Below, one piece after another: positions 22,287 through 42,400 of a stretch of 64,000 nt of DNA. How positions within the stretch are numbered: position 1 is the first letter of the stretch; each line of letters opens with the position of its first letter. The DNA is taken from the NCBI GenBank assembly GCA_964234715.1, contig OZ174282.1; one strand, given 5' to 3'. Made by a program: the position numbers and the translations under genes. This DNA is from Podarcis melisellensis (Eukaryota). Below the pieces are notes generated by a model that saw only the letters and a list, made by a program, of their open reading frames with translations, searched no databases and was not told the origin of the DNA.

Positions 22287-26253
<3,967 letters not shown>

Positions 26254-27544: not shown

Positions 27545-30430
27545 CACTTTGAAACAGGTTCTAATGAAATCCTTAGAAAATTGGAACACAAAAGATCAGA
27601 ATTAGAAGTGTTATATATGGAGAGAATAGGCAAATCCATGCTCGTTGTGAGTCAAAAGTTATATGAACATGGTAAAAAACATTCCAAATGCTAGCCAGGG
27701 CTCTCAAAAGTAAGCAATTTGTTTAAATAATTACTTTAAATATGGAACTTTCACCCATGACTAAAATCAGATTAGCAATATGTTTATAGAGTTTTATAAA
27801 GAGATATATAACCCAAATAACCCTTTACCTGAAAAAAATTAAGTGAGAAGATGTGTTATCAAACCTTTCATAAAGAAAGCACAACAACATTCTGCAGAAG
27901 AAATTGATCAAGCTATTAAAAAAACTGAAATACTGTATATGAGCCCTTGACCTGATGGGCTTGGCAACACATTTTTTAAGAAATACAGAGACCTACCGGT
28001 ACTCACACTTTATATTTGTCAACTTTATCCATCTGGCAAGAGCAATCAGGCGCTGATACATAGGCACTGATCCAGAATAACTGTCCTTCTAAAGCCAGGC
28101 AGAGATAAAGCACAGGTGTGCTCATACAGGCCAAATACCTTATTGAATCAGGACCAGATTATCTTCTTCTCAATTTTAGTTGCACATTTAAATCTAATAA
28201 TTAGGAATTTAATCCATACAGACAAAACATACCTCTTGGGCATATCTTGGATCCCGTAAGACTGTTCTTCTTGGATTTATGTTTCTTAGAAATTTACAAA
28301 GCCTTTGGTGGTTTGGAATGGTGTTATCTCTTAACATTTTGCTGGCATGCCAACTAGGCAATCACCTTATTATAGCAATAGCTAAACTCTACTCAAATAA
28401 TTCAGCTACTCTAAGAATTAATAACATGGACTCCACAGCAATTGCAATCTGGAGAGGGACAAAAAAAGGTTGTCCCTTGTGGCCACTGCTCCTCGTCCTC
28501 TCTTTTGAACCATTTGCTAATATCTTACGTCTTAATCCAAATGTAAAAGGATATTCGAGAAAGGGCGAAGAGCATCTGTTGACAATGTATGCAGATGATA
28601 TTGTTGTAGTGATGAAAGGCCCTAAGGGTCAGCCTGTGCATTAAAGGAAGAATTAACATATTTTTGTGAAGTGGCAGGCTTAAAAATAAACACTGGAAAA
28701 TCAATGATGTTTTTCAGTCTTCCACCACTGATTCAAATACACACTTGTCATATTCTTAATACACCTATGTGCTGCTCTGCATTTGGAGACCTGGGTGTGC
28801 CAATTCTAAAAAACATGAACCATGAATCTAAACTGAATTATCCCATTATTTTAAAAATGAACATGGACTTTAAAAAATGGAACAAATTTAACCTTTCCAT
28901 TTTAGGCTCTATTGCAGCAGTACATATGTTAATTCCCCTTTTCTGTCCCTCTTTCAGGTCCTCCTTACTTTTCTCCAATGTCCAAATGGCAAACTAAAAT
29001 TGTTTCATATTTCAAGAAAAGTCTTCAAGGTTGCCCATGAAATCTTCTTTTCTTTTTTAAATCAAAGTTGTTGGGGTTTACCAAACCTCTCGGTATACCA
29101 TGACATGTTCCAATTGAGACAGCAGGCTTTCATGATTATGAAGGATGGTAAGAAATGGATCAATTTGGAAGAAAAACAAATAGCCCTAGGTCTGCTATGT
29201 GCTTTATCTTTCAAAAACCTTAAAATTATCACCCAAATGAATAACCCATATTTACAAACTAAATTGAGGATATGGAAAAAATTGAGGATATGGACTCTCC
29301 CCAGGTTGTTCACCACTCACTTCTCTGCAGACATATGCCAGTCTGAAAGATGATACTGATACTTTTAAAGCTAAAATAAAGAAAAGGGTAAAATTGGGTT
29401 ATTTCAGACTGTAATTTTTTTTTTTACAGGAGTAAGACCAGTAACTTTAAATGTACCAAAAATGGGAATTAACTTTAAAGAGGCTTCAAATTCTACAAAT
29501 TAAACATTTACTAAAGGATCTGATAGTTAAATTACATGCAACTAATTTTGAATGATCCAAGGTGCCACTAGGTAATGGAGGCAAGGAAGTAGTATCAAAA
29601 TTTTATGGTTACTTAATACAGAACTAATTTGGGGACTTGTCTAGCCTAAAATAAAGATGGGAATATGATGTAAAAGTAACAATGGAAGACTCAATTTAGA
29701 AAGGGGTGTGCATGAAGAAACCCTTTAAGTCAGTGTCTGCAAATATTAAAGAACTTTCACTCAAAATATTCCACAGATGGTATAGGACTCCATCCCAACA
29801 TCACATCAACTATAAGCCCCTTATGTTGGCATGGATGTGACACTAAGGGGACAAATATACATTTTTGGTGGACTTGTTTTTGAATACAAGTTGTTTGGTC
29901 CCTGGATCACATAGAACTAACAGCACTAATAAAGGAAACAACTAAATTCACTCCATAGCTTTTTATTTTAACAATGTTCCAAGGTACAAATAAAAATGTA
30001 CTATCTAAAGAACTCATCACTTTACCAACTGTAGCAAGGCGGTCTATTTTCCAACACTGGAAAGATTTTGTGGTTTAAAAACATGTACAACACTGCAATT
30101 TCAGCAAAAAATTACATTTAGTTTTCAATTAATTCAAGTTGAGGCACAACCTATGGATTTTGGAGCAGTGTGGTGGGATTTTATATAGTATGTTATTAAT
30201 ACTAATTGAAGTAACTTGATTCCACAAGTAAATAAGAATGTTTGCCTATTGTGAGACTGTAAGATGATGTCATCCTGTTTGTGGATAGAATATATCTTAT
30301 TCTACTATCTTTTTACTTTAACCTTATTTATAGCATTTGTACTCCAGATGATTATGGCATAATATCAGTTTATTAATATCACAGCAGACCTACAGTGAAA
30401 AATAACATTTATAAGAAAATAAAAAATTGA
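27545..30430 (+). mobile_element. Degraded L1/Tx1-type LINE (ORF2 reverse transcriptase remnant)
   Basis: Frameshifted RT motifs RGTKKGCPLWPLL, MYADDIVV, AGLKINTGKS and WGLPNL, AT-rich composition, and an A-rich 3' end. Confidence 0.85.
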
Positions 30431-30697: not shown

Positions 30698-33600
30698 TCA
30701 CAAGAGCCCCAGATTCTTCATCGTCCGCCATCGGTCCTTGATCGCCACAGGAGTGCGGTTCTTAAAGGGGAATGCCTGGGAAATGGCTTTCCACCTCCCT
30801 TCCCCAAACTTCTTCACGCCTTCCTTAATCCACTGAGACTCCTCTGAAGTCCAGATCTAGAAAGAAGAGGGCATAGGCTCTCATGAGCAACCATCAAGTG
30901 CTGCAAGTCTTGCCCCTTGTCCCCATGACAGAACAACAGGTACCCCACCCTCTGGAGATGGTTTTATGGCTGTTGCTAACAGAGGATTGCCACTGACATG
31001 GGATGTAGCCCAGTAACTCACAGCAGGCAAATATCCAGCCCATATTTCAAGACATTAAACCCAACTTGGTGGCACACTTAGTCCTCCTTCTGCAATATGT
31101 GGGTAATAAAAATAAAATTCTGCCTCCTTAAAGTGTGGTTGAAGAGGCCATCAAAGATAGCAGATATAATGTGCTGAGATTGCCCAGGCTTCTTTGAAAC
31201 ACCTGGGTACCCAAGACCCTTGATTATTTAATTAATTAGGAGAGGCTCCTTAGTCCAGTGGTTGAACATGCAGAAGATCCCAGCTTCAAACCTGTGACAT
31301 CTCCAGGTAGAGCCACAAAAGAGACACCTGGCCTGAAACCCTGTAGCACAGACAATACTGAGCTAGATGGACCAGGATTCAGCATATGGCAGCTTCCTAT
31401 GTTCCCATTAATGGGGATTTCACCAGTTATTTCATTTGGGAGAGGGGGTCCTCATCAACTGGCCTCCATTTAGAGGGGTCTTGTCAAGGCAGGCCTATTT
31501 CTCCCCACTGGAGTGTTCAGCTCCAGACTGGGTGTAGGCTTGGTTACCTTCTTTTTCGAACCAAAGAGGGAAGTGTTGATGCTGCTGCTGCTTTCTTCCT
31601 TCGATTCTGAAACACAAATTCATTTACAAACTTTATGGGATGCATGGAACCACTCGGTAAGCTGGTTATTGCTACCGGCTCAGCAGTTGGGAGGTTTTAC
31701 CACTACTGCACCTCATCAGAAATCCAGGATAGTGGTCAAATTCCACCCAGCCCTTGGCATGATGTGTACAGTCAACTACTGATGGAACTATGTTAGGGTT
31801 GCCATACATCCAGGGCATCCCAGACATGTCCTCTTTTGGGGGGCCAACAGGCCCATCCAGGGGGATTTTTACATTTTAAAGGAAATGTCCGGGGTTGTAA
31901 GGAGGGGTTATTTATTCATTTATTGCTTGGCCAACTCTACACACCACTGCTGCCGCCAGACCAAGCTAGGAAAGGAAGAATGTAGGTGCACTTCCTTCCC
32001 TGGCTCAGGCTGTCCTCTTTTTTGCTGTTCAAGATATGGCAACCCTAAACTATGTGGCAAACAGTCATCCATGTTCACTCACAGTTGCCATCTCATTCTA
32101 GCACGGTTCACAAAATTTATCACTTTGTTTTGCAAGATGTTTAGCAGGTTTTGAGAGTTTTGCTTTTAGCTAGTCTGGGCATTGCCTAAGCAAGCCTCCT
32201 GAAGGACCGCAGTTAACAGTTCTCTTTGCTTGCCATGCTGGCAATGTTTTTCCCCATGTCATTGTGATGTCACTGGGTAATGCAATGTGAGAAGCCATCA
32301 AAACTGCACAGCTGCTTTAATTAGAAGAGTGCATGGAGCTACAATTGAGCATCATGCAGAACAAGAAGACAGTCTGAGGCAAAAGGCAGTAATTTTGTCA
32401 GTGCTGCTGCTGTGCACTTGGGAGTAGGTAGTCCAAATATTTTACTTTTCTGATCCAAGAGCTGTGCCCCCAAATCCCTCTGCTTACTGTATACAGGATA
32501 CTAGCTGCTTACCAAAAAGTTCATCCTCATCACTCCAGACCTCCTTTTCTTCATCCTGACTTAAACAAATTAGTCTCCTCTTTGCTAATCTGAATGGAAC
32601 AGAGAAACACAAGTAAGGAAAGACCTACCCCACAAGGAGATGAGACGGGACTGAGATGCATCAATTAATGTCGCACACAACCAGGATTATGGAGATGCTG
32701 GGTTAAGTATCAGAAAAGGAGTGAGGTTAATTTGTCACAGCAAACACACCACTGCAGAGACCCATGGCAGCTTAAATATGAGCAAATAGCTGGTGGCAGA
32801 AACACAAACCCTTATCCTTGGTACAGACGGAAGGAGGGAGGGGGGAAGAGAAATAACATTTTCTACCTTCCATCTGGCAACTGAAGCTAACATTCCAGGC
32901 ATCTGACAAAGCAGAAACAGGTGTTTCTGTCACAATAAATTTGTTTAGCAATCTTTAATGGGGCCAGAGACCGTATTGTCAATTCTGCTGTTTTTGCAAT
33001 CTGAGTAATAAAAATTAAGACAATCTGCTTCTACTAGATGGGGGAGAAGATGCACAGCGATGCAACCCTACCACTGCAAACCACCTTTGCCTTCCTTGGA
33101 GCTTCTGGGCTGAGGCCTAAGGCCTTCTAATGGATTCCTTGCAAAGGTGAAAGTTGCACCAAATGCCTCATGCTGTGCCAGTTCCCCAGCAGACCCCACA
33201 GCAGTCATAGCCTCTTACCTGGGATATTGGGAGGTATCATCAGGCTGGGTGGGGTTTTGGGGCTGTGCAGGCCGGACAACCAAAGTTGCCACAGGCCTCT
33301 TGGATGGAACTTGGCAGGAAGTTGGGGGGTTCCAACTCTCTGACCCCATAACCAATGTGCTTATGGACACTGAGCGTTCACTGGGGTGTGGCCTGGAGGC
33401 AGCACGGTTCTTCTCTATTTGGCACTTGGCTGCGTGGAAATCAGAAGCCAAACATGGCTTGGGGAAAGTCCAGTCCAACTTGTCCAATTTTGAAAACTCT
33501 TCATCTGCATCTGGGGAATTGGACAGGATCTTGAAAGCATCCCTCAGAGTAGAAAACCCATACGAGCCCATCCTCTTAGGTGAGCATCTGCAAAATAAAG

Positions 33601-36600
33601 AAACATCAGAAGGTTGCTCCACAAGTTTTGCCAATTTATGCTGCTGACCTCACCCCCCAAGACCTTGCTCCCCTGGAAGCAGGTGCAATCTGAGTGCTGA
33701 GAGCCAGAAGTTGTATGGCAAAACAGCATGGCAAAGGGAGTCAAAACTGTAAGAGGCCATAGGCTGCTAACCTGTCAGAGTCACTGGAAACTGCTGAGAC
33801 AGTGGCCACAGAAACCACAGCAGGCTCTGCAGCTCCACTGGTTTCTTCTTCTGGCTTTGAAGCTGCCTGGCACTCATCAACCACTTTAGCAAGCTCCAAA
33901 ACAGCTCCCTTTGCCTCCATCAAAGGCTTTGCAACTGTCTCACGGCCTCCCTCCAGAGACTTTGGCTGTTCTTCCACTGTATTTCTAGGCCCTGCCTCAG
34001 GCCGGGGCTCTTCCAAAGTCTCATCAGATCTTCCCACAGATTCAGGATTATCTGCTGCCACCACCTCTGAGGTTTCTTTCACCATTTCCTCCTTGCTGGC
34101 CATTTCCAAAGGATTGAGCCTGGTCTCTATCTGATCATCCAAATCCCTTTTTGCCATCTTAAACAGAGAATGTGAACACAGTTACTAGAGAACACTTCTC
34201 AACTTTATTTTCTTTTTTCTAGTTATATACAGCAGCCATGCCCAAGCTGGTGCCCTGAAGATGCTTTACCTACAAATCCCCTAATTGTAGGGCCTCATGA
34301 TGCTGGAGCACAGCCTCATGATGCTGGAGCTGTTGGGAATTGCTAGTCCAAAACATTGTCAGGTTACAAGCTTGATATATGTCAAATGTGACATTGGAGT
34401 CCTGTGCTGTTCTGCTGTGGGGTATATTTCCCAAACACATAATAGTTTGGCCAGGGAGGCTTTTGTCTTAAGCCTCAGGTGCTGAATGTACCTTTTTTAT
34501 CACAGTGTTTAGAGGGCAAGAGTTCTGCTGTGGCAATGTAGGTGATATTGAAGTGCTCCAGCAACACACAGAAATATATGAAGAAAGCAAGCTGTCTTTT
34601 GCCAAGCCAGACCAATGGTTCATATAGTTTCCTATCACCACATATTGAGTGACAGCGGCTCTCCAGGGTTTCAAGCAGGGGACATTCCCAGTCCTACCTA
34701 GAGATGCCAGGGATTGACCTTGGGACCTTCTGCATGCAAAGTAGATGTTCGACTACTAAGCTATACTCCCACTACAACACCCCACATCTCAATCAAGCAG
34801 CACTCCACACCCTTGCTTACCTCTAAGAGAAAGGGCTCAGAGTCACTCAAGCAGCTTTCTAAATACAGAAGTATTCTTTGCTGGAAAGCTTTATAGGAGA
34901 AGTTCCAGATGGCTGGATGAGCCAAGTTTTTTTCTCGGATGATGCTCTGGAACATTGACCTCATTTTCTAAGCAAGGGGAAATGTTTTTCAGTACTTGCA
35001 AGCAAATTGCAGCACAGGGCAGAGATAAAAGCAATTTTTGCAGTCATTAGAAGTTTAAACAAAACAAGCCAAACCAGCAGAGCAATCTAGGTAATATAAA
35101 AAATGCATGAAAGTAATGATGACTAGAGATGTGGACCACAATCTGTAGCAACATGGGCTGCTTGTGCATGCAATTTTTCTCATTGCATAAGGGGGACAAT
35201 AAACTCTCAAGTATTTAAGACACTCACTGAATTGGAGAATGTGGGAAGGACAAACCATGACTCTGCTTTGCAGTGAAATGACCCTATAAGAGGCACATTT
35301 CAACAACAACAACAGCAACATGAACTCATACCTGCTGAAAGCTCACCTGGGAACTTGGGTCCTTTGACATGTGTTTCCTCAAGATCCTGCTGGCTTGTTC
35401 ATATTCTTTGTTTTTTAGACAGATTATAACAGCCTGGAGAAGACAAAATAATGGTTTGCAAGGAAGACTTTGGGAGACTGTTCCTAATCTAAGAAGATAC
35501 TGTTCGAGAGATATCCCTCTGGAAATTTTCTAGATCTGCTTCAGATTTTCAACCCAGTGTGTTTTCATTGTGTAATATTAGACCACTTATTAAAGAATTA
35601 AAAAAATCAAGTAAGGCAAGTTACTTAAAAGTCTGTAGGCTAACAACATTGAAATAATGTATGCCTCAGGAGAGTCCAGAAGCCAGTTTTTCCTGGATTG
35701 CCCCCGAAGGAAACAAGTTTTCAAAACATGCTGAGTTCCAATAAACCCAGGCACTTCTGAGGAGACATTTCTCTTTCATTTCATCCCAACATATAGGAAT
35801 CGTGCCTCCTTGCTTCTATTAATTTTTGTGAACTTATTTAAAAGTCCAATTTAAGCATGGAGAAAAATAGGCAAGAATTAATCCTGGCATTGAATTAGCA
35901 CCTTAATTAAACCCTTTCCTAAATATACTGCATTTTGAAACTCAAGACAGCTGTCCTCATACTAACTAGGCTGAGAAACAGTAATCAGTGACTACAGAAA
36001 AGGAAATGCTAACACTTACTGCTTCCTTTATTTTATTTCTTATTTCTTCTATTATATCAATGCCTATGTCCAATTCATTCTTCATCTTATCCAAAAGAAC
36101 AAGGGCATATTCAAGAGGTGTTAACTTGGTCTTGGTATCAATGGTCCAATCTTCTTCAATCCTAGACAGAAGCTGGATAATCCGCAGCTGAATGCCAATG
36201 CATTTCTCTAGCACTAGGGGCCTTGCAAGCACAGCTGGAGAAGAACAAGACAGTCAAAACAGCCACTAAGCAAAATCAGATAGTTCAGCAAACCAGGTGT
36301 AACGAGGCTTGGGTAAGGCACCAAAGCCCTGTCCCATATATTGTATCCCTGGCCATATACAGGCAGATAGCTTCATCCCAACATGCCCTTTGGCCCAGGA
36401 ATCACTTTGCATTTGCTTGTTTTTTTGTGTGTGATCTACAATATCCTTTAGTATCTATATATACACAAACACACACATTTTTTTTTAGTGTCTTAATCTT
36501 TGTGGTGAGAGATCTTGCTGGAGCTCCAGTTTTGTGGGGCAGAAATGCAGTATGTACAGATTTTATTTATAATAGATAATAATAATAATATAATAAAATA

Positions 36601-37962
36601 ATAATAATAATAATAATAATTTTTATTTATACCCTGCCCTCCCCAGCCAAGGCCGGGCTCAGGGCGGCTAACAAGCAATAATAAAAACAAGCTGAATGAT
36701 TACAACTTAAAAACAAAATTAAAATACAACATTAAAATATTGAAACATTAAAATATTTATAGACACCCGGAAGTAATTACTGTGAGAAAATGAATGATAA
36801 AGTACAGTAGTTGAGTTTCTTAGAACTACACTCCAAAGGTGCTAGGCCATTCCTAATGGTTGGCTTCTGGAAACCATCACACTCAACTACAAGCCACACC
36901 AAAAACTCAATAAACTCAATCTCTTAATACACACATCAACATTCTCCAATTTGAAATAGATTTCATGAAGGCTCTGAAGTTTTCAGGTACTTAGGGGGCT
37001 AAAGGCGGCCTGGGGGGGGGGAATCCTAACCCTTCTCCTGACCATCTGTGATGGGCTTAAGGAAGCATTCATTTAAGGGGGGATGTATGTATCCTAACCA
37101 TCTTCCTGAGAATCACAGCTGGCTGTTTTCAGACCTTCCTTCTGGGTTCTGTGCTGTTGGTTAGTTGTACTTTGTGCATTTTCTTTAAAAATCATTATTG
37201 GATGAATTTCCCCCCAAACTGATTTTAGAACTTTGAATTTATTGTTATTCACACTTTTATACTGTATTTTTGTTGTATCACAATTGTTTTAAATTTGTTA
37301 GCCACCCTGAGCCCGGTTTTCTGAACTGGGAAGGGCGGGGTATAAATAAAAAATTATTATTATTTCCCTTAATGTCTAAAGGCAAATGACAAACGTTCCA
37401 GGGACACAGACTGTATTATATTTTAAGTTGCTTTAGGTTCATTATTTCTTAAATGAAAGCACCTAATGACTATTAAATGTAATATGTCACTGTTACTTAT
37501 TTACATTTATATAAGTGGAACCAGGGCTATTACGTGACATATTTTAATGCTTGATGTTTTAGTATGTTCTGATATGTGCTGTGAGCCGCCCAGAGTGGCT
37601 GAGGAAACCCAGCCAGATGGGCGGCGTATAACTAATAAAATTATTATTATTAGTTATTTACACTCACGTTCCTTAGCAGGAAATACCTTTACAGTTATTT
37701 AACCCAGCGAGAATGTTCCCCAAATGCCCCTTTCGTAAAACAAACTGGTCTCCTCACCGTATATGACGTCGCGCAGCTGGCGAAAGTCCTGGCTGCGCCC
37801 GGCCCGGAAAGCCTGAAGGGCTCGGTGGGCGTAGAAGAGGATGGCCCACCGGTTCACCGCCTCCTCCAAGGCCTTTTCGCGAGCCTCCGCGGCTCCTTCG
37901 GGCGATGCAGCAAGAGACGCTCCAGGGCCGCCGCCCGCCATCTTCCCTCTCCCGCGCGCCAT
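30698..37962 (-). CDS. TERF2: Telomeric repeat-binding factor 2, 9 coding exons, 567 aa (alternative ATG at 37941)
   Basis: Exons 37962-37758, 36234-36020, 35433-35347, 34967-34821, 34157-33772, 33587-33219, 32589-32513, 31606-31548, 30856-30698 (1704 nt). TRFH domain (LEEAVNRW…LTPLE), RAP1-binding-like [11 protein letters not shown], acidic WSDEDELF, and telobox Myb [19 protein letters not shown]…IKDRWRTMK. Confidence 0.95.
36576..36760 (-). repeat. (AAT)n microsatellite forming the tail of a retroposon 3' fragment
   Basis: About 45 bp of AAT repeats adjoining tttataccctgccctccccagccaaggccgggctcagggcggctaac. Confidence 0.65.
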
Positions 37963-39400: not shown

Positions 39401-42400
39401 CACCCACCCACCCGTGTTGCTGGTTTGAAGCAACTAATGGGGAAATGCGGAGTGGATTCTTCTGTCTTGAGTCGGGGCTGGATGCGCTGTAGGACGATAT
39501 GCAGTCTTGCAGTTGTGGTTGCCCAGAAACAGGATACCAGCCTCCAATTCAAGGGGAAAGTTGCAACTCCTTCACTACAGTGACACCTATAAAAGCGCTT
39601 AACTCCTCTTACTGCTTGAAAGGGACTAAGCGAAGTTTGCAGGGCTGGTATCATGCCTTCGAGAGAGGAAGGAGCCGATGCCGGTCAGAGCAAGCAGCCT
39701 GACCTAGGTGGTCCAAAAATCGGGGGGGGGGCGGGCGGCGGCGGGAAGCAGCTTCTTGCCATTCCTGAGTGAACCGTGCAGCTTGAACGTAGTTGCTGGG
39801 AGGGCTCCAGTGGCCAGCTGTGAGAGCAAAACCCTTTGGGGTAGGCTGGAGCAACAGCCAAGGCAAGCAGAGGTGGAGCGGGTGCAGCTTTTGCTGAGCA
39901 GCAATGGTTCTCCTGCCTGTCATGCAGCTGCTGAAGGGCTGGAGGCAGATTCCTCTACCAAAAGGCCTCCTGTCAGATCCGGCCAGTCATTACCAGGAGC
40001 CAGTAGTAATTGGAAGCTATGCGTTCCTTGTGTTTTGGCATCTGAAATCCTCCCCTTTTGCCATCCCAGGTAGTACCAGCAGCTCTTCAACAGGATTCCT
40101 GCTGCGTTTAGCCCTTTCAGAGTGCCCCATGCGGACCAGCTGCTTTCTCAGTTTTAGGGTCAGTATTTATCCCAACTGGGATGATGAGGCAGGGTAGCTT
40201 GGCCAGGTCTAGCCAAAGCCAACTTGGAGCTTTAACCTAGATATACCAGACAGAGTTCTGTGGGTGTGTTAGGGTGGAGCAGGGTAGTAGACCTTCCTCC
40301 TCCCGTTCTCCAGGGGTTGGGTGGGCTGTAGGCTTGGGGGTGTATCTCACTCTCTTTGCTCTCCCAGCGACGCTTTAAGGAGGCAACAGTGATTCTCGGT
40401 GGGGGCAGCCTGATCTTCACCTCATACCTGGTGGTCAAGGGAGATGAGCATTTCTACGCTGCACAGCTGATGCCACTCCTGCAGAGAGTGGTGGGCCCTG
40501 AGACAGCCCACAGGCTGGCTGTGCGCTTTGTGGCTCTGGGGATCCTGCCCTGCTCAAGCCAAGCTGACTCGGATGCATTGGTGCGTAAACTATGCAGGTG
40601 ACTGGCGGTAGAGGCTGCTGTGCTTCTGTTTTGGGCTCTGCCTCTCATCCTACTGCTCCTAATCCCTTCCTGTGGGCCCACCATGCCCTTTCTCTCCTGG
40701 GACAGGATGGGGCCTTGCCTGTCTCTTCTGCTGCCTAAGGCTTTCTGCTGGTTAACAGGTGCTTAATTGGCTTCCCAGGCAGTGGAAGTCTTTGGGCGCC
40801 GGTTTCGGAACCCTCTTGGCCTGGCTGCTGGTTTTGACAAGCATGGAGAGGCTGTAGATGGACTCTACAAGATGGGATTTGGCTTTGTGGAGGTGGGGAG
40901 TGTCACCCCAGAGCCCCAAGAGGGGACCCCCAGGCCCCGTGTCTTCCGGCTGCCAGAGGACCAGGCCATTATTAACAGGTAGGAGGCTGGAACAGAGGTG
41001 GGTGGTAAGGGTGAGCCTTTGACAAGCCTCTCCTGCAGTGGAGGATGAGGTGATGTATTGAGGAAGAGAGGGGTGGTGGTATTCACCTGAGCTGTGTCCA
41101 CCACTTTCTAGGTATGGGTTCAACAGCCATGGGCATGCAGTGGTGGAGCACAGACTTCGAGCCCGACAAGAAACTCAGCGTCAGCTCAGCTCAGGTGAGG
41201 TGGCTTGTGTCCTCCCTGCCCATGAGCCATGGAAAATCCCAGCCCCCTTCTTCCCCCCACCCAATTGCTGCTGTACTAGTACATGCTTGTGGCAGTCAGA
41301 TCTGGAGAGGAGCTTTCAGGGAACGTGAAGAGTGGCAAGGAGCAAATAATGTTACAATTGATTAGTGGAGGATTTCTGGATCCTGCCCTGGACCCTTCCC
41401 AGAGCATCTCTGGTCAGGAGCAGTGCCTGCCTGAGTGCCAGTGGCTGCTTTCTTTTACCCAGCCCTAACAGGCCCACTGTGGCCCTGTGCTCTCCCTGGG
41501 GCAATCTCTTATGTGTCTGCCCCCTCACCAGGGATTCCTCATGTAGCAGTCATCTTTGCTCTGGCCTTCCCTGTCTGACTGGCTTCTGTTTGTGCATCCT
41601 CTCCCTTCCTAGCGGGGATGCCTCTTGGAATAAATCTTGGCAAGAACAAGGCCTCTGTGGATGCAGCAGCCGACTACGTGGCAGGTGTGCGTGTGCTGGG
41701 CCCGCTGGCTGATTACCTGGTGGTGAATGTTTCCAGCCCCAACACACCGGGACTGCGGGCCCTTCAAGGCAAAGCCGAGCTGCGCCTCCTGTTGGCCAAG
41801 GTGGGTCTCTTGCCCCAAGAGCATTTCCTGTCCTCTTGGTCCCCTCCAGTAAGCAGCCAGGGCGCCCTCTGGCACACTTTCAGCGCCTGCTCTCTGGGCA
41901 GAGGGCAGCAGCTGCTTGGAGCAAAGGAGAAGCAGCCTACTGCTCCAATTTCACATTTATTGAACAGTGCCTGGCAAAGGAAGGCCAGGGCTTTGCTAGT
42001 ACATTGTTCACACATCCTACTGCATACCTGATTGAGAACCTTGTACAAGTGCGGCAGCCTTGCCTCCAGATGGAGGTGGATCAACAGGAGGCTGCTTCTA
42101 TCTTGCCTTCCTTCCATACCTGCCCTTTGGATCCTGCTGTTGAGCCTCTCTTGCTCTGCAGAGCTCAGCGTCTGTCCCTAGTTCATAGCAGGGGCAGTTC
42201 CCCTCTCCTAGGTGTGTTGTGCTGCGCTCCATGGCTTGTAATCATGTGCCCTTCTGGGCAGTGTGAATGTGATCTTTGGCTGTGTGCTTCTTGGCAGGTG
42301 CTGGCTGAGAGGGACGCCTTGGCATGCAAGCACAAGCCGGCTGTATTGGTGAAAATTGCTCCAGACCTCACGGCCCAAGACAAGAAGGACATTGCCAGTG

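Follow-up and report, generated by a model that had tools for sequence, protein, structure and literature searches.

Exact and ancient loss of one TERF2 intron shared by lacertid lizards and an amphisbaenian

Three models of intron loss are recognised (PMC3652778, PMC3698931). Recombination with reverse-transcribed spliced mRNA gives exact loss, simple genomic deletion gives mostly inexact loss, and end joining at microhomology, where loss can be exact, is a further route to precise loss (PMC3652778). Microhomology-linked intron loss is documented in metazoans (PMC3698931). For the TRFH domain of human TRF2, the protein relevant to what follows, the mutation F120A abolishes SLX4 binding, and for other TRFH clients its equivalents are said to be critical (PMC4334113).

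We describe here what is very probably an exact, ancient and shared intron loss from TERF2. Events of this kind, in which an amniote housekeeping gene loses a single intron exactly, are known, and the present one adds a new instance; we found no earlier report of a TERF2 intron loss in the literature on TERF2/TRF2 structure, on TERF2 in lizards, on squamate intron loss, or on rare genomic changes in Amphisbaenia and Lacertidae. Intron loss is uncommon in amniotes, and a clean loss that can be dated, from an essential gene as well studied as this one, is informative about loss mechanisms. The evidence for placing amphisbaenians next to lacertids comes almost entirely from sequence-based trees; published squamate timetrees date the split between the two groups to over 100 million years ago, within the Late Jurassic to Early Cretaceous.

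The window, the whole stretch of DNA that was analysed, comprises 64,000 nt from Podarcis melisellensis (assembly GCA_964234715.1, contig OZ174282.1). Queries were single window exons or database proteins. Relatives were found via the 122-residue exon carrying the Rap1-binding motif (exhaustive search, 21 TERF2 representatives), and a full-length skink TERF2 used as query (word search) named 120 vertebrate TERF2 proteins. TERF2 loci with their introns were compared in nine species, each by tblastn of the exon peptide followed by reading of the splice sites. The non-squamate amniotes in this set are platypus and Terrapene; the human gene lies outside it, and human TRF2 is represented by PDB chains only. 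Amphisbaenian gene structure is represented by one species, Rhineura floridana, and gene structures of teiids and gymnophthalmids fall outside the comparison.

The window holds nine TERF2 coding exons and eight remaining introns. The features used below are these:

37759..37962, minus strand: TERF2 coding exon 1, with ATG at 37962, ending ...RDVIY + G in phase 1
36235..37758, minus strand: intron 1, kept, 1524 nt, collinear with Lacerta agilis at ~92% identity
36020..36234, minus strand: fused coding exon 2, 215 nt, part of the TRFH domain (splice sites, open frame, PDB match)
36150..36151, minus strand: former intron site, between G (36151) and AT (36150-36149) of an Asp codon
36140..36142, minus strand: Ile codon ATT, positional homologue of human TRF2 Phe120 (gap-free exon 3 alignment)
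35434..36019, minus strand: intron 3' of the fused exon, kept, 586 nt (splice-site reading)
35347..35433, minus strand: coding exon 3, 87 nt
34821..34967, minus strand: coding exon 4, 147 nt, end of the TRFH domain
33772..34157, minus strand: coding exon 5, 386 nt, variable linker
33219..33587, minus strand: coding exon 6, 369 nt, Rap1-binding motif (Pfam TERF2_RBM, E = 2.6e-16)
32513..32589, minus strand: coding exon 7, 77 nt
31548..31606, minus strand: coding exon 8, 59 nt
30698..30856, minus strand: coding exon 9, 159 nt with TGA stop, Myb domain (Pfam Myb_DNA-binding)

The stretch at 36020-36234 is a single unbroken exon of 215 nt, as a first-pass annotation of the window had it. It is preceded by a polypyrimidine-AG acceptor (...ctccAG, at 36236-36235) and followed by a GT donor (GTaagt, at 36019-36018), and its frame from 36232 runs through 71 codons, VLARPL...KIKEA, with zero stops. 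Exon 1 ends ...RDVIY+G before gtgagg, so that the codon split between the two exons reads G+CT, which is Ala; this boundary too had been read correctly in that annotation, and all of its nine coding exons, including those of 87, 147 and 159 nt, were located in the window. The former intron site lies in the context ...ATT GAA GAA G|AT TGG ACC ATT... of the minus strand. DHODH lies upstream of TERF2 on the opposite strand, and TMED6-like exons lie downstream.

The gene is the intact, orthologous TERF2 of a lacertid lizard, closest to Podarcis among the species compared. The 71 residues of the fused exon align end to end with human TRF2 TRFH chains (phmmer against PDB sequences, E about 2e-7), and the sole gap is of four residues, opposite GENL of the human chains (1H6P, 3BUA, 4M7C, 3BU8). 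In other exons the Rap1-binding motif scores 59.3 bits with Pfam TERF2_RBM (cut-off 27) and the Myb domain 35.7 bits with Myb_DNA-binding (cut-off 24.4). Taken exon by exon, the peptides share 93-100% identity with TERF2 of Podarcis lilfordi and P. muralis, with neither protein fully identical. At the DNA level the identity to the Lacerta agilis TERF2 locus is ~92%, introns included, and a 2.2-kb stretch spanning the fused exon and the intron on either side of it runs collinear with that locus at 91.8% identity. The TMED6-like exons lie 3' of TERF2, as they do in a read-through gene model of Sceloporus (P0008). The window, Lacerta agilis and Rhineura all keep the introns on both sides of the fused exon as well as every other exon, so the gene is not a retrocopy.

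The state of the locus in the nine species compared with the window is as follows, with our locus handles in brackets:

Gekko japonicus (L003): split, 84+131 nt, intron of 469 nt
Tiliqua scincoides (L008): split, 84+131 nt, intron of 1068 nt
Phrynosoma platyrhinos (L001): split, 84+131 nt, intron of 1709 nt
Varanus komodoensis (L004): split, 84+131 nt, intron of 663 nt
Crotalus adamanteus (L009): split, 84+131 nt, intron of 520 nt
Terrapene carolina, a turtle (L007): split, 96+131 nt, intron of 1281 nt
Ornithorhynchus, the platypus (L006): split, 96+131 nt, intron of 813 nt
Lacerta agilis (L002, 2305-2519): fused, 215 nt, assembly GCA_009819535.1
Rhineura floridana, an amphisbaenian (L005, 1756-1970): fused, 215 nt, assembly GCA_030035675.1

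At this intron, between exons 2 and 3, public annotations contain gene-model errors in Phrynosoma, in Varanus and in one bird-like model.

All seven split loci have a phase-1 GT-AG intron at the identical position, within an Asp codon (G|AY) after R-I/L-E-E. An intron loss had been proposed for this exon in the first-pass annotation, to be abandoned if outgroups lacked the intron; platypus, turtle and five squamate lineages have it, with codon and phase matching, which bears the proposal out. The same annotation had given a 96+131 split for human TERF2, a gene outside our comparison; platypus and box turtle have just that layout, with the intron after GENL. In the fused loci of Lacerta and Rhineura the exon/intron layout is that of the window, introns other than the lost one being present, and a 22-nt junction, GATTGAAGAAGATTGGACCATT, is identical in all three.

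The ancestral amniote intron between TRFH exons 2 and 3 has thus been removed base-exactly. Compared with the intron-bearing squamates, zero coding bases were gained or lost (84+131 = 215), and the junction GAAGAAG|ATTGGACC is the spliced junction of Crotalus and Tiliqua, save for ordinary substitutions. Exact excision leaves the spliced mRNA and the protein as they were before, so that the loss is neutral at the protein level and by itself leaves the TRFH domain unaltered.

In the NCBI taxonomy Lacertidae and Amphisbaenia together form Lacertibaenia, which is sister to Teiioidea within Laterata. The event is not specific to a species or genus, as Lacerta and Rhineura share it, and the comparison of gene models that had been suggested for dating it makes the loss, most parsimoniously, a single event that took place no later than in the last common ancestor of lacertids and amphisbaenians. 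Geckos, skinks and three toxicoferan lineages bracket Lacertibaenia and retain the intron, so a single loss is the simplest history; the single origin of the fused exon rests on parsimony.

Two other accounts of the fused exon deny that an intron was lost at all. If it were an artefact, whether of misassembly, of cDNA contamination or of a copy processed in full or in part, it should hardly sit between two kept introns, one of 1524 and one of 586 nt, of a complete nine-exon gene, itself flanked by DHODH and TMED6-like exons, or share the collinearity with Lacerta agilis noted above; moreover, the independent assemblies of Lacerta and Rhineura show the fused state too. We consider an artefact highly improbable, and the concordance of three independent assemblies argues, as a check at the assembly level, that misassembly is not the cause. 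That the fused exon is ancestral, with the intron gained in other lineages, is a formal possibility and even more remote: the intron would have had to be inserted at one and the same nucleotide, with its phase also identical, in monotremes, turtles, geckos, skinks, iguanians, anguimorphs and snakes, and the fused state is limited to one nested clade.

A different matter is whether the loss was imprecise, as the first-pass annotation had claimed in proposing a single deletion of the intron together with the four codons of GENL. When mammals or turtles alone are compared, this much speaks for it: the fused exon falls short of 96+131 by 12 nt, with the gap adjoining the old intron site. However, the intron-bearing squamates already lack GENL, with an exon 2 of 84 nt, and this refutes the one-deletion model; the 84+131 structures of Gekko, Tiliqua, Phrynosoma, Varanus and Crotalus rule it out. 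Only if the squamate loci with the intron were paralogues could it be revived, and their full-length, collinear gene structures argue against that. In fact GENL is missing from all squamate TRF2 proteins examined (more than 20): those of lacertids, Rhineura, Salvator, skinks, a cordylid, an anguid and a varanid, and likewise those of pythons, boas, a colubrid, a viper, agamids, anoles, phrynosomatids and geckos. TRF2 of turtles, birds, platypus, a marsupial and rabbit carries the tetrapeptide. In an alignment of 18 TRFH sequences the only length difference, 195 against 199 residues, is a single gap. The 12-nt change is thus separate from the intron loss, older, and squamate-wide, having arisen while the intron was still present.

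How the 12 nt came to leave the coding sequence is suggested by the exon edge itself. In turtle and platypus the tail of exon 2 reads GAG/GAA G GR GAG AAY CTR G|gt, and in squamates the exon ends after the first G of that tail, the intron opening with GTGAG(T). If GGR became GGT (GGR GAG to G|GTGAG), a donor would arise 12 nt upstream of the old one with the phase unchanged, and either donor, old or new, would rebuild the Asp codon. Consistent with such a shift, the intron start of Tiliqua, GGTGAGTAACTGG, matches the platypus exon tail, GGGGAGAATCTGG, at 10 of 13 positions, and at five of six outside the donor hexamer; in Phrynosoma a GTGAGT is preserved exactly 12 nt downstream of the donor in use. 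The signal is clear in one of the five intron-bearing squamate lineages, and the three besides Tiliqua and Phrynosoma are too diverged. We therefore regard a splice-donor shift in the squamate stem as the probable source of the 12-nt loss; a 12-nt deletion in the DNA of the squamate stem would leave exons of the same length, and is the possible but less probable source.

The site of the former intron lies within the loop that bears a TRFH docking residue, by alignment and by an AlphaFold2 model; that this loop is near the docking surface had been said, rightly, in the first-pass annotation. The model, of the Lacerta agilis TRFH domain (93% identical to that of the window), has a pLDDT of 85.8. 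In it, ...LLSRIE closes a helix and the next 12 residues form a loop. Its top structural matches are human TRF2 TRFH complexes with NBS1, RAP1, TIN2, MCPH1, Apollo and SLX4 peptides, and TRF2 ranks above TRF1 (TM 0.82-0.90 against 0.66-0.76). Exon 3 is 131 nt in all species, and DCSFD of human TRF2 and DWTID of the window therefore align without gaps and are positionally homologous, with human numbering checked against the offsets of the PDB constructs. The position of human C118 is an invariant Trp in squamates, and that of human F120 is Ile in the window (36142-36140), Thr in geckos, and Val in an anole and a tegu. To judge from these alignments, a remodelling of the docking loop has occurred squamate-wide and independently of the intron loss; it would be biologically the more interesting observation. 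A loop four residues shorter, with the docking phenylalanine F120, which human TRF2 needs to bind SLX4 and Apollo-type motifs, replaced by Ile, Thr or Val beside an invariant new Trp, may matter functionally. The change falls on the very residue at which mutation deprives human TRF2 of SLX4 binding (PMC4334113), and it may interest telomere biologists. There is also a practical correction to be made: the TRFH-loop difference belongs to all squamates and arose apart from the intron loss, which is not protein-altering.

As to the mechanism of the loss, its exactness favours the reverse-transcript model. Germ-line TERF2 would have recombined with, or been converted by, reverse-transcribed spliced TERF2 mRNA, over a conversion tract short enough to span this one intron only. 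The excision is exact, as that route predicts; of a 3' bias or the co-loss of adjacent introns, also expected of it, there is no sign, introns 1 and 3 being kept and only intron 2 of 9 lost. This lowers the claim without excluding it, since short conversion tracts occur, and we lean modestly towards the reverse-transcript (cDNA-conversion) route as the one taken. The other candidate is an exact excision at the DNA level by double-strand-break repair, with microhomology-mediated end joining at AG...AG and no RNA intermediate. It fits the disappearance of a lone 5'-proximal intron of short to medium length with its neighbours kept, and the intron-bearing squamates do share a suffix of 1-2 nt (AG) between the end of exon 2 and the end of the intron. 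However, that much is what any consensus splice junction gives, so it does not discriminate either way, and an exact in-frame outcome is a small share of end-joining products, although selection would remove the others. We hold the end-joining route to be a tentative second possibility.

The fused exon is a discrete character, and a candidate rare genomic change supporting Lacertibaenia. A broader reading joins two claims: that the loss is a homoplasy-poor marker of Lacertibaenia (of Laterata, if teiids share it), and that squamate TRF2 recruits its TRFH clients differently or the client motifs have co-evolved. That both should hold is, as we see it, rather unlikely; if true, the marker would give support independent of sequence models for worm lizards next to lacertids.

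Among the closest known systems are the exact single-intron losses catalogued in mammals (Coulombe-Huntington & Majewski 2007, as cited in PMC3652778, and the mouse/rat survey of PMC3652778). As there, the TERF2 loss is base-exact and affects one intron of a gene that is otherwise intact, conserved and broadly expressed, with the neighbouring introns kept and the protein unchanged. The TERF2 case differs in being squamate and old (Lacertidae and Amphisbaenia), and the intron lost is the second from the 5' end, without the 3' bias. With microhomology-mediated intron loss (PMC3698931) our case shares a single exact deletion and a short AG at the junctions of relatives; the AG here is just 1-2 nt of splice consensus, giving that system no specific support.

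The older 12-nt change resembles splice-donor sliding, in which an in-phase GT a multiple of 3 nt away is taken into use: exon 2 measures 84 nt in squamates against 96 nt in both turtle and platypus, with the phase kept, and in Tiliqua the intron opens with bases that look like the old exon tail. It differs in that the sliding would here be read from sequence comparison. Finally, human TRF2 (TRFH structures 1H6P, 3BUA with Apollo, 4M7C with SLX4, 3BU8 with TIN2 and 5WQD with NBS1) has the same TRFH fold at about 58% identity and the same domain order of TRFH, Rap1-binding motif and Myb, whereas in all squamates the loop after the helix ...SRIEE is four residues shorter, and W and I/T/V stand at the positions of C118 and F120.

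Exon 2 of TERF2 is 96 nt long in turtle and platypus and 84 nt in squamates. In Tiliqua scincoides the first 12 bases of the following intron (L008:1788-1805) are similar to the 12 bases that close the exon in the platypus (L006:3841-3859), with 10 of 13 positions identical when the shared G is counted, and also to those in the turtle Terrapene carolina (L007:927-945; 9 of 13, again with the shared G). Phrynosoma platyrhinos moreover keeps GTGAGT (L001:4111-4130) exactly where the old donor stood. Together, these sequence comparisons suggest a splice-donor shift, rather than a deletion of DNA, as the source of the 12-nt shortening in squamates.

The deposited Phrynosoma protein (P0017) joins RDVIY directly to DWTID, leaving out the 84-nt exon 2, which the genome nevertheless carries intact (L001:4028-4111) with a weaker donor, GTTAGT. 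Since skipping this exon preserves the reading frame, P0017 represents either an annotation slip or a genuine exon-skipped isoform. Two further models run on into the exon 2/3 intron, a Varanus UniRef entry (P0018, reading ...RIEEGECGEP...) and a bird-like sequence (P0010, with a 16-residue insertion after GENL); both reflect mis-predicted splice sites at the exon 2/3 boundary.

Around TERF2, the following features were found in the window:

22290-23939, minus strand, TMED6-like exons, directly downstream of TERF2 and sharing its strand
28279-28641, plus strand, reverse-transcriptase fragment (Pfam RVT_1, 26.6 bits, under the 29.6-bit cut-off)
40767-40979, plus strand, DHODH exon (Pfam DHO_dh, E = 5e-22)

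In Sceloporus, the RefSeq entry called TMED6 isoform X2 (P0008) is a TERF2-TMED6 read-through fusion. The reverse-transcriptase fragment, placed between TMED6 and TERF2 in an AT-rich stretch, is probably a decayed non-LTR retroelement. Upstream of TERF2, the DHODH exon sits on the other strand at a distance of ∼2.8 kb from the start of the gene, and the GC-rich stretch between them (GC 0.58 at 38-40 kb) looks like a shared, divergent promoter region.

The TRFH docking loop corresponds to 36137-36160 of the window (minus strand) and to columns 67-79 of the TRFH protein alignment A1. The loop is four residues shorter, lacking GENL, in all squamate TRF2 proteins than in those of turtles, birds and mammals. 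At the positional homologue of the human docking residue F120 squamates carry Ile, Thr or Val, and at that of human C118 an invariant Trp.
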